A stretch of DNA of 64,000 nt from NCBI GenBank assembly GCA_965240325.2, contig OZ251226.1, positions 1,612,001 through 1,676,000 of the forward strand. Reading direction: 5' to 3'. The stretch is from Rebecca billardiae RCC1528 (Eukaryota > Protista > Haptophyta). Positions 6,920-41,684 of this stretch are shown here, piece by piece (within the stretch, counting starts at the first letter, position 1; each line of letters starts with the position of its first letter). The notes beneath the pieces were generated by a model. The model searched no databases. It was given only the letters and a program-made list of their open reading frames with translations, and was not told the DNA's origin. Made by a program: the position numbers and the translations under genes.

Positions 6920-8790
6920 ATGACCGCGTTCCGCGGTCCTTTTCCGTAGAACGAACGTAGTTCGGGGCCCGCGGTGGCGGTGCACCCTCCGTCGCACCCT
7001 CCGTCGCGATCGAGAGTGGGCCCGCCCGGCCGCGAGCCCGGCAGCGAGTAGACTCCAGCGGCGCGCCGCCGCCCGCCGCGCGGCCGGGCGGGCCCATCGG
7101 ATCGGGCCATCGCAGCCGCCGGCGAGGCGCCGATTGTGTACAGTCGAAGTCATCTGTCATGGCCGACTGAGATCGTCGGCACGCGCTGCTGCTGCGAGAT
7201 CGTCGGCGTCGGCACGCGCTGCTGCTGCGAGGGCTGCTCGCTCGCCAGCTGACCGAGGCACTCGAGCAAGCCAAGGTATGCGGCACGCCTCGTCGCAGCC
7301 AGCCAGGGCCTCCATGATTTTGTACAGCACCTCGCACGCGTCCTGGCTCCTGCTGCTGCTGCCCAAACGCCGTTGTCCACCGACAGACCTCCGCGATTGC
7401 GTCGTGGAGCGGCTCGAGCAAGCTACGCGTCGGCCCCACCTCGCTGGGCCACTCGCAGTTGAAATGCGCGAGCGCCAGCGAGCGCATGCTGGACTCACGA
7501 TGGGGTTGGTGCACTGCTCCGCCGCGGCAGATGTGGCGAGCGAGACGATGGAAGGGCACGCGAGCAGCGCGGCCAGCAGCGAGCCGAGGTAGCACGTGAC
7601 GCCTAGGTTGAGCGTGCCCAGCAGGCTGAGCGAGCCGGCCGGGCGCCCCCGCTGCGGTTGTGCTTGCTCTGCAGCGGGCATTTCCCCGCCGAGCGCGGCG
7701 AGTGCCTCGAAGCGGCTGCCAGCTGTTGGGCCGGATGATGAGGAGGGAGGGAGCTGGCCTGCGGGGCGCGTGGTGAAGTCGGTGATCAACCGCGCAGCGC
7801 CACCGCTGCCGAGTGCGCCCTCCGCCGCCAGCACCTTGCGGACCTGGCCAAGGAGCTGCTTGATCGCTTTTGTTGACACGCCGTACTCGCTCGCGGCGCC
7901 GGGGATGGTCTGCTTGTGCCTGGCGACGGAGATGGCGGCAGCGGTGCTCTGGAACGTGGTGTTGTTCACCCGCGTCACCGTCCTCGAGTCGAGCAGCGCG
8001 TTCAATACGCGGCGAACGTAGTCCTGGTCGGCGTCGCCGGTCGAGGTGCTGCTTGCCATCGCCCCCCACGTGCGATCGGGCCCACCTCTGTTGTTTTGCG
8101 TCGGTGACGGGGCCGCGACGACTCGACGCGAGCATCTTCAATAATCTATGATCATCATCAGGGTTACGACTACGTGAAGCGGTAGAATAGAATTTCATTT
8201 ACGAGCATTGATACGACGCGGTGCAACGTGAAGCGGTTTTTTTAAAGATACGACGCGGTCTAATGACCCATTGTTCATACATGTACATGAATGGGTCGTC
8301 ATAAACGGCGGGCGGCTCATTTATGACCAGACCGGGCCCTGGGTGATTGATGATCAGAACCCGCAAAAGCTAGCGGCAGTCCAGCACACAAGTAATGAAT
8401 TAATAACAAGCGCAGTCCAGCACACAAGTAATGAACTAATGGCCCGCGGTGCCGGCTGGCTATCTAGATACGTCGTCATCGCTCCTTGATGACCTTGCGG
8501 CAATCTCATTGGCTGGAAAAAAATCGCTTGTAACGGTTCGTTACGTTATGGATCCTAAAGGGCGTGAAGTTTTTTGGACGGGCGTCACTCCAATATGAAC
8601 TTGTCGTGGGCGCGACCTTTGTCGCCGGATGGATACCTCTAGTGCGGTCTCAAAATTCGAAACTCGGTCTCCTCCAGCCCTGAAAATCGTCCCCCGTCCC
8701 TTTTTTCTTGATCAAAGATCTTTTTGAAACGTGGTTAGGGCCCACGGAGCGGGCTCCACGCTGCGCGCTCCGCCCTGCACCGCGGGCCAT
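6920..8790 (-). mobile_element. Helitron2/Helentron-like non-autonomous element, copy A (HTH-USP cargo)
   Basis: Near-identical to 29066-30860 in opposite orientation; 5' ATGGCCCGCGGTG at 8790, subTIR at 6966-6976, terminal hairpin and CAT at 6920. Confidence 0.75.
7157..8059 (-). pseudogene. HTH-like + truncated USP (peptidase C19) ORF inside element A
   Basis: USP Cys-box-like GTLNLGVTCYLGSLLAALLAC and QDACEVL; compensated frameshift (+2 then +7 relative to copy C); no His box. Confidence 0.65.
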
Positions 8791-9031
8791 AATCAATTAT
8801 TAGTAGCAGCATCGTCAGCGAACTTACGCCGCGATGTATAGCAGTGCTAGTCCGGTAGTGCCGAGACTGATTACTGATACGGACGATGTCGACGCCTCAC
8901 GACGTGACGACCGGACGACTCGGCGCCGCTGACACTGAGTTATTCTGGCGGCCGGGACTACGCGCGTCGCAATACAACGACGCCATCAATAACTGATGCG
9001 GCGGTCTCGGGTCTGCGCTATAAATATAATT

Positions 9032-39516: not shown

Positions 39517-39567
39517 TCAGACCGGACGTCCGGACTCGGAGCGGTAATGACTGCTGAATCGGAGCTC

Positions 39568-41684
39568 ATGGCCCGCGGTGCAGGGCGGAGCGCGCAGCGT
39601 GGAGCCCGCACCAGCGGGCCGGAACCACGTTTCAAAAAGATCTTTGATCAAGAAAAAGGGACGCGGGGGCCGATTTTTAGGGCTGGCGGAGACCGAGTTT
39701 CGAATTTTGAGACCCTCTCTACAGATGCATCACGGAGAAAAAAACCGCGTCCACGACATTCCCCTAATCAATCGTGGACGGCCGGGCGTGAGAGTTCACT
39801 TCTGTGTGAAGTAGGACGGTTACAAGTCCAATACAAGCGTCAGCTTCTCCTAAATTCCCCTTTATAATGGGCTCCGGGTGATCAGACTGGCGGCCGAAGC
39901 CTCCAGCCCTACCCTGGCCAGCCCCCAACCAACCACCACTTCTTTGAGGCTATTTTTGCACGTCCTTACGGGATCAGTGAAGTAACCAACCGATATATAT
40001 TGGCTTCGTCGGGGTCGTATTCACTACTGGAGTATATTGGGTAATTGTGGGTACTCTCGTTCAGTCTATCATATCAGTACATTGGCTCGCTAACGGTGTT
40101 GGGGGCATAAGGTCATTTTGGGTAATTGTGGGTATTATCATACCCAGTTGGGTGCCAGGGGGCGCGCGGCACGCGCTCGCTCCAAAACGGGGCGAGCCCT
40201 CGTCGCCCTCGATCGACCGCCATCGGTGTGGACGACCGCGCGGAGCGCGCGCCGCGCGCGCGCCGCCCGCGCGGCCGCGGGCGCCTCCCGCGCGGGTGGC
40301 GCACGCACGCCCGCGCGCCCGCCCGCGCGCGCGGCCGCGTTTGCGGGCGCGCGCGGATTTTTGAAGGCTTCTGTCTGTCGGGCGTTGCGTCCGACTCGTG
40401 CGCCATGTCGTGCCATGTCGTGGCGTGCGCATGTGCGCACTCTCGGTGGGGTGGTGCGCGGGCGGCGGCGCTCTCCTGAATTCTACCCCGCGCCCGTTTC
40501 GCTGTGCGTGCGCGCTGCGTCGCGCAGGCACGCGAGAGTACCTGCGGCTCCCGCGCGGCCGACGTGGACGGTTGCCCCGGCGCGCCGCTCCAGCACGCGC
40601 TCGCGTGTCTGCGTGGACTGGGTTATAGCGCGCGTGCCGCGCCTTCTTTTCTCGGTGCAGGCGCGCTGGCTGCAGGCCTTGGCCATCGACTACGCGGCGC
40701 GCACCCTAGCACTCCCTAGCAGCCAGCCGCGACGAGTCCGAGTCTGCGCGCGCAGATGGGCGGCGGCGCGCAGGCCGTGCGCGCGCAGATACACGAGCAC
40801 GTGCGCGTGAAGGCGCTGGGCGCCGAGCTGGCAAAGCGCGACGCCGAGCTCGACGCGTGCGCGCAGAGGCGCTGGGCGCCGAGCTGGCGAAGCGAGACGC
40901 CGAGCTCGACGCGCTGCGTCACGCGGCACGGATGCGCTGGGCGCGCGCGCTGCCCTTGTCCACGCCCTGCAGCAGCTCGAGCAGGTGTGGACGGCCCTCG
41001 AAGCTACGGTGGGCGAGCGCGCGCCGCTCAGCCTGCCGCTGGCCGCCGCCATCCTCGAGGCCGACGCGGCGAAGCAGGCGGCGGGCGAGCACGGCGGCGC
41101 GGTGCGGAGCAGGGCACGCGTGCGCCTGGCGGCGGGCGCGACACGCCACTCGCTTCGTCCCACCCCGAGCTCCGCTCGGTCTGCGCGTGGCTGCGCAGCG
41201 TGGGCGGGCAGCAGTGGCGCGCGCTCTCGCTATGCCGGCCCGAGGCGCGCCGGCTGAGCGACCAGCGGCCCTTCGTCGAGCGCATGGCGCAGCGCGAGCA
41301 CCTCTAGCAGGTGCGCGCGCGCGCGCGCACGCGCCGGCCCGCGCCGCGCGGCGCCTCTCGCCCTGCACGCGCGCCGCCCCGCTTCCCCGCGCGGCCCGTC
41401 CGCGCCTCTCGCCCTGCGCGCGCGCCGCCCCGCTTCCCCGCGCGGCCCGTCCGCTGGTGTCCCGTGCCACCCTTGGCCGTCGGCGCGCCCATTCACGCGC
41501 CGCGAGTCCGACAGACGGGTCTGACTCTCACTCACTCTCCGAGACGGTGCGGCTCGGCCTGTCTGACTGCCAGGCAGACGCCAGACCGTGCGGATTGACG
41601 ACGTCACGGTCTCATTCTCAACCACTGCGCCGCGGGCCCCCAACTGCGTTGGTTCTACGGAAAAGGACCGCGGAACGCGGTCAT
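39568..41684 (+). mobile_element. Same family, copy D (captured gene-fragment cargo)
   Basis: 5' ATGGCCCGCGGTGCAGGGCGG.. plus ~150 bp of family sequence; 3' CGCCGCGGGCC..GACCGCGGAACGCGGTCAT; contains the G-rich block and a frameshifted ORF fragment. Confidence 0.7.
40690..41310 (+). pseudogene. Captured frameshifted host-gene exon inside element D
   Basis: VKALGAELAKRDAELDA (tandemly duplicated), VWTALEATVGERAPLSL.., HPELRSVCAWLRSVGGQQWRAL in different frames, followed by a host-type donor CAG|GTGCGCGC. Confidence 0.55.

Follow-up and report, generated by a model that had tools for sequence, protein, structure and literature searches.

A probable non-autonomous Helitron2-type transposon family with constant ends and three kinds of cargo in the haptophyte Rebecca billardiae

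We analyzed a 64,000-nucleotide stretch of eukaryotic DNA from Rebecca billardiae RCC1528 (contig OZ251226.1, positions 1,612,001 to 1,676,000 of the forward strand), hereafter the window, in which all positions are counted from its first letter. The window has a G+C content of 66.5% and carries genes for a Kelch and MYND domain protein, a class-3 lipase, a Patched/sterol-sensing protein, an exostosin-like protein, a protein kinase, and a PWI/RRM protein. It also holds a family of hairpin-ended mobile elements, represented by four complete copies, named A to D, and one old, decayed copy, named E, all of them intergenic (Table 1). Two motifs delimit the complete copies: a 21-nt motif at the 5′ end, with four exact sites (8770–8790 on the minus strand, 9032, 29066, and 39568; chance expectation 0.02 in the window), and a 19-nt motif at the 3′ end, also with four exact sites (6920 on the minus strand, 10697, 30842, and 41666; chance expectation 0.07). 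The two motifs pair in the correct order and orientation and give four elements, in agreement with the initial annotation of this DNA, which described four complete copies with constant termini. Comparison of the flanks bears out its further statement that these are unrelated from copy to copy: similarity among A–D stops immediately beyond an invariant A on the left and an invariant T on the right. Copies A and B are arranged head to head with 241 bp between them, and their flanks are AT-rich (0–40% G+C in 20 nt), while those of C and D are less so.

Table 1. Coordinates of the element copies, of the structural parts of their ends (given for copy B), and of features within the cargo.
Feature	Position	Strand	Description
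Copy A	6920–8790	−	Type 1 cargo; 1871 bp, with the flanking A and T counted; exact 5′ and 3′ motifs; flanks GATTA|TGG and TCA|TTAG
Copy B	9032–10715	+	Type 2 cargo; 1684 bp; exact 5′ and 3′ motifs
Copy C	29066–30860	+	Type 1 cargo; 1795 bp; exact 5′ and 3′ motifs
Copy D	39568–41684	+	Type 3 cargo; 2117 bp; exact 5′ and 3′ motifs
Copy E	30863–32696	+	Old, decayed type 1 copy, 5′-truncated; found by BLAST and nhmmer
5′ asymmetric terminal inverted repeat (ATIR), 12 nt	9034–9045	+	Copy B; starts 1 nt from the 5′ end
5′ hairpin, 51 nt	9034–9084	+	Copy B; ATIR paired with bases ~38–50 nt downstream
3′ ATIR	10658–10668	+	Copy B; matches the 5′ ATIR in reverse complement; 45 nt from the 3′ end
3′ hairpin 1	10670–10682	+	Copy B; 5-bp stem, 3-nt loop
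3′ terminal hairpin 2 and final A	10697–10714	+	Copy B; 7-bp stem, GAA loop; T at 10715 assigned to the target
Inverted copy of the 5′ terminus, 18/21	8439–8459	+	Inside copy A, at the border of module and cargo; 3 mismatches
Type 1 cargo open reading frame with USP/UCH-like Cys-box fragment	7157–8059	−	Copy A; also in C (~29741–30650) and in E
Piece of host DNA in D, ~86 bp	39851–39939	+	98–99% identity with the DNA upstream of either lipase gene copy (23521–23609 and 37001–37085)

Alignment of the copies with one another reveals constant ends around exchangeable middles. A and C are 94% identical over 1495 bp and carry the same cargo; B matches them over a 5′ module of 340 bp and over ~200 bp of 3′-terminal sequence, its middle being unrelated; and D shares with the other copies only the first ~190 bp (by MAFFT and BLAST; ~260 bp by nhmmer) and the last 65 bp. 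The three types of middle proposed in the initial annotation are therefore found again, as an A/C type, a B type, and a D type. The conservation is concentrated at the very ends: the first 46 nt show 96–100% pairwise identity across A–D, with A identical to C and B identical to D, and the last 31 nt are the same in A, C, and D, with one extra spacer A in B, whereas the remainder of the shared modules has diverged by 6–23%. Such constant ends next to diverged modules form the pattern that would be expected of cis-acting sites under selection.

Copy E is about 77% identical to C by BLAST and directly adjoins the 3′ end of that copy. It has lost its first ~200 bp and its terminal hairpin is partly deleted; its decayed 3′ end is located at 32650–32696, and nhmmer reports a 3′-end match at 32650–32702 and a 5′-module match from position 168. 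The count of five copies in 35 kb given by the initial annotation is right in substance, the fifth being this 5′-truncated remnant. An arrangement with C nested in E, which would have displayed the pre-insertion site, was considered and dropped, as the DNA to the left of C has no significant module match and 56 of 300 shuffles score as well. Searches of the window using nhmmer profiles of both ends detected no further copies.

Copy A carries in addition an inverted stub of the 5′ terminus at 8439–8459, which is partly kept in E, mostly lost in C, and absent from B and D. As a result, the 352-bp 5′ module of A is bracketed by 21-bp inverted repeats, which gives it the look of a miniature inverted-repeat transposable element (MITE). 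In sequencing run X1, at 8614–8764, the summed contig depth is 165–350 over the first ~190 bp of the 5′ module versus 5–8 over the cargo of A; such a depth is not a copy number, and it hints at dozens of copies of the 5′ module in the sequenced sample.

The conserved ends are made up of inverted repeats and stem-loops. Since the flanking A and T are invariant, the exact limits are a matter of reading, and we read the element as A|TGG...TCA|T, with T as the first base in all of A–D. At the 5′ end, the ATIR is folded into the 5′ hairpin, whose predicted DNA fold in B and D has an energy of −23.5 kcal/mol (z −3.3, with 0/200 shuffles as good) and which is weaker in A and C (z −2.3). At the 3′ end, we located the inverted copy of the 5′ motif that had been announced in the initial annotation: in A, B, C, and E this 3′ ATIR is a perfect match over 11 nt, and in D it has a single change, where a G-T pair is kept. 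It is followed by two hairpins, of which the terminal one, hairpin 2, is identical in A, B, C, and D and ends one base ahead of the last A of the element. In hairpin 1, A, B, and C have G-C as the second pair where D and E have C-G, a two-sided compensatory change, and over the 3′ hairpins 98% of cells are paired, as against 11–47% when the partners are slid. Because the extreme ends have in common only a 7-nt palindromic core, the elements have no true terminal inverted repeats (TIRs).

Several isolated matches to parts of the ends were set aside. A match to the 3′ ATIR at 20144 has no hairpins downstream and was treated as chance, and a GGTCATGGCC junction at 55443 is a chance match within the exostosin-like gene. 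The matches to the end motifs in sequence collections (one for the 3′ motif, in viral contigs, and five for the 5′ motif, in metagenome contigs) extend over only ~20–30 nt of homology and are attributable to chance in GC-rich DNA.

The flanks define a short target. The three bases before TGG are TTA, TTA, TGA, and TCA in the four full copies, TGA and TTA in two further copies that appear as loose ends with different flanks in sequencing run X2, and TAA at the inverted stub inside A, with T at −3 and A at −1 in 7/7 left flanks. On the right side, T is found at +1 in 6/6 flanks (A–E and one X2 copy), and the next base is A or T in 5/6. Judged from these flanks, the insertion site reads TNA|T. 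The 3′ end of the element, TCA, together with the T that follows it, repeats the same motif, as would the TCA-TGG junction of a circle or a tandem. Contigs from the sequencing runs contain no joint skipping A or B; a joint from 6543 to 10715 in run X3 was rejected as low-complexity noise, the contig being AT-rich and 70 nt long, with sides of 22 and 19 nt.

The cargo is non-functional and of diverse nature. The open reading frame (ORF) of the type 1 cargo includes a Cys-box fragment, which in A scores against the Pfam family UCH with an E value of 4.8e-5 and 23.5 bits, just under the cut-off of 23.9; in copy C, a QQDA-type motif is present downstream, in frame with the Cys-box. Between A and C, the substitutions in this ORF are distributed 4/4/5 over the three codon positions and the frame is broken by indels of 1, 2, 4, and 7 nt; from its sequence, the ORF behaves as a decaying, neutrally evolving gene fragment and not as a working gene. 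Neither a word-index search nor an HMMER scan of 1.84 billion representative proteins returned a relative of this ORF, in collections that seem to be without the proteins of this genome. The middle of B and the ORFs of D match no Pfam family, and no copy encodes a transposase (cargo ORFs of A–D, Pfam). Copy D contains a piece of DNA nearly identical to the region upstream of the lipase genes, and because the homology between the lipase arms continues beyond both ends of this piece, it is D that carries a fragment of host DNA. Direct or tandem repeats are also present in the cargo: in B, 10204–10294 and 10429–10520 are 91% identical and lie 225 bp apart, and in D, repeats with units of 56 and 51 bp occupy 40800–40918 and 41351–41454, respectively.

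This architecture is close to that of Helitron2. In Helitron2, ATIRs of 8–15 bp are described, with the 5′ ATIR placed 0–2 bp from the end and forming a 5′ hairpin, and the 3′ ATIR placed upstream of a terminal hairpin; elements begin with T, and non-autonomous copies have in common ~200 bp of the 5′ end and ~50 bp of the 3′ end around foreign cargo (Bao & Jurka 2013, PMC3627910). The HELIANO paper gives the same canonical layout for HLE2 (PMC11417382). The present elements have ATIRs, a 5′ hairpin that includes the ATIR, 3′ stem-loops, and an initial T, that is, the features by which Helitron2/HLE2 are recognized, and they share with Helitron2 of Chlamydomonas (e.g. Helitron-1N1_CRe and CRe-1/2/3) both this layout and the association of common ends with foreign cargo. 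The 3′ ATIR is 45 nt from the end here and ~20–30 nt in Helitron2, a difference that arises because two 3′ hairpins are present in this family. The target differs as well, being A|T here, and no RepHel partner was found in the window. We consider that the elements probably constitute a new family of non-autonomous Helitron2/HLE2-type (Helentron-like) rolling-circle transposons with three cargo subtypes, their membership in Helitron2 being a structural assignment and their partner enzyme a putative one. The resemblance to Helitron2 and Helentrons that the initial annotation had pointed out is upheld: the inverted repeats are asymmetric, a 3′ hairpin and variable captured cargo are present, and there are neither symmetric TIRs nor a long target-site duplication (TSD). 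A literature search found no description of Helitron-like elements in haptophyte or Pavlovales-type algae.

Other members of the superfamily show partial likeness. HINE/DINE-1 elements, which are non-autonomous Helentrons, have subterminal inverted repeats (subTIRs) of 12–15 bp, sometimes palindromic, at 2–4 nt from the 5′ end and 38–60 bp from the 3′ end; close to the 3′ end there is a palindrome, and the 5′ subTIR is accompanied by a further inverted repeat (Thomas et al. 2014, PMC4067079). The present family resembles them in the length, palindromy, and positions of the subTIRs, in the 3′ palindrome, and in the further inverted repeat; HINEs, however, insert in TT with T-runs at their borders, whereas this family has TGG...TCA ends in TNA|T and is devoid of a central microsatellite. 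In Fusarium oxysporum, FoHeli1 and FoHeli2 have a TNAT target in which the border T is ambiguous, and their hairpins have a GAA loop, while FoHeli3–5 have TGCCT at the start and CTCCTGT at the end (Chellapan et al. 2016, PMC5148889). FoHeli1/2 are thus similar to the algal family in their Helitron2-type ends, their GAA-loop hairpins, and their target, and their joined ends point to a circular intermediate; they differ in being fungal and autonomous, with a known RepHel and the ends TCAG...ATTTT. Canonical Helitron1 inserts between A and T without duplication, as this family may do, and the family has in common with it the 3′ hairpin and the capture of gene fragments (PMC5148889, PMC11417382, PMC4067079). 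The family nevertheless does not conform to Helitron1: the ends are TGG...GGTCA, with no 5′ TC and no CTRR, the hairpin is 1 nt from the end instead of being followed by a 10–12 nt spacer, and the ATIRs and 5′ hairpin present here are both missing from Helitron1.

The initial annotation went further and held that the termini fit neither canonical Helitrons nor Helentrons and could belong to an undescribed HUH group. Neither proposal is supported by the comparison. Every geometric feature of the ends lies within published ranges (PMC3627910, PMC4067079), and CTRR, whose absence had been counted as anomalous, is, like the 10–12 nt spacer, a mark of Helitron1 only. The A|T target alone differs from the usual T|T, and the targets of Helitron2 vary, as exemplified by the TNAT of FoHeli1/2 (PMC5148889). 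The departures from the published layout, namely the A|T target, borders without runs of T, and the identity of the terminal bases, concern traits that vary within Helitron2, and an A|T target combined with a Helitron2-type frame is a peculiarity of the family and not a new class.

Some observations weigh against a Helitron2 assignment. HLE2 elements usually insert at T|T (PMC11417382) and the flanks here are A|T in every copy. A regular-expression search of the six frames of the window returned neither Rep motif II or III nor a Walker A motif, and within this window no RepHel is linked to the ends. The covariation in hairpin 1 comprises one base pair in five sequences and is not significant alone (48–59 of 500 shuffles). 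Finally, the sequencing runs, which provide only short contigs on this stretch, contained no empty site and no circle-junction read, and because neither was seen, insertion at A|T and a 2-bp AT duplication are inseparable.

The unusual target and the lack of a Rep motif in the window would also suit another HUH enzyme, such as a Replitron-type Y1 Rep, a helicase-less Rep, or a member of an undescribed group, carrying out hairpin-guided single-strand chemistry outside the Helitron superfamily. Replitrons have short direct terminal repeats, a right-end palindrome, and a Y1 Rep without helicase (PMC10288648), and in the present elements the motif GGNCCGCGG is found in direct orientation near both ends. 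This direct repeat, however, which is the only one, results from the palindromic core CCGCGG, no ATIR with a 5′ hairpin is present in Replitron ends as described, and Replitrons are barely documented in haptophytes, where one transcript and one locus are known (PMC10288648). As the whole layout is that published for Helitron2 and HINEs (PMC3627910, PMC4067079), we regard an enzyme of this other kind as unlikely. Rather improbable, too, is a distinct algal HUH lineage in which a frame of the Helitron2 type would go together with an A|T target of the Helitron1 type, a single TNA|T nick motif for ends, circle junction, and target, a GNA-loop hairpin one base from the nick, and an atypical (e.g. 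helicase-less) Rep outside HLE1 and HLE2.

Cut-and-paste transposition by a DDE transposase, with short TIRs (GGCCCGCGG...) and a 2-bp AT TSD, would account for the AT on both sides of every copy, which can be read equally well as a TSD or as an A|T target, and the MITE-like 5′ module of A, itself flanked by AT, is suggestive of it. The arrangement of the repeats nevertheless makes this quite improbable: the good inverted repeat is terminal on the left side only, lying 45 nt inside the element on the right, and the true extreme ends share no more than the 7 nt of their core. Moreover, the last 45 nt are conserved in all copies and stop sharply at TCA|T, which makes them part of the mobile unit, and the bracketed module exists in copy A only, the inner repeat being decayed in C and E, with no free module in the window. 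A tyrosine-recombinase (Crypton-like) or other unclassified element, or else copies produced by segmental duplication, would agree with the absence of TIRs and of an evident TSD and with the large inverted duplication in the region, but is highly improbable, given that the flanks differ immediately beyond A and T in every copy, that a second sequencing data set has other copies with yet other flanks, and that, to our knowledge, Cryptons have not been described with an ATIR-plus-hairpin layout or as families of short non-autonomous copies.

For a Helitron2-type family, a transposition pathway can be proposed whose order of steps is borrowed from the known relatives of the family. Because no copy encodes a transposase and the window is devoid of a RepHel motif, the link to RepHel is one that we infer: a RepHel, composed of an HUH Y2 nuclease and a Pif1-like helicase and encoded elsewhere in the genome, would bind the 5′ hairpin and nick TNA|T at the left end, and would then unwind the strand from 5′ to 3′. 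The 3′ ATIR and the hairpins could act as a stop signal, upon which RepHel would nick TCA|T at the right end and release a single-stranded circle joined as TCA-TGG. This circle would be inserted at a TNA|T site in AT-rich DNA between genes, leaving the target unduplicated. Under such a scheme, one TNA|T nick site would be common to both ends, to the circle junction, and to the target. If the stop signal were occasionally bypassed or the template switched, this could give rise to the swapped middles and the captured pieces of host DNA.

The surroundings of the elements are themselves rich in repeats. At 23500–37106, an inverted duplication has arms of ~3.9–4.3 kb that are 96.7% identical and each contain a gene with a class-3 lipase domain; its 5-kb spacer contains a (TA)71 array, unknown DNA, and the elements C and E. 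Perfect long dinucleotide arrays are located at 28048–28190, (TA)71, at 53019–53301, where (AC)71 is joined directly to (AT)70, and at 39457–39516, where a (AG)30 array ends 51 bp upstream of copy D. At 44208–44476, in very GC-rich surroundings, two repeats of a 136-bp unit are 99% identical. The ORF of the Kelch and MYND protein (2551–5844, 1097 amino acids) found no match in a word-index protein search, the collections again seeming to lack the proteins of this genome, and exact look-ups of three host ORFs returned no record. A homology search with the host genes as anchors for orthologous contigs and empty sites gave no match, and neither did Rfam and tRNA scans.

The current picture of transposon classes is unchanged by this family. 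It is nonetheless well defined and multi-copy, and its exact limits aid the repeat annotation of this genome. The occurrence of three types of cargo on the same ends makes it a clean natural example for the study of end recognition in Helitron2, and the apparent TNA|T nick motif common to its ends and its targets provides a simple hypothesis on the specificity of the enzyme.

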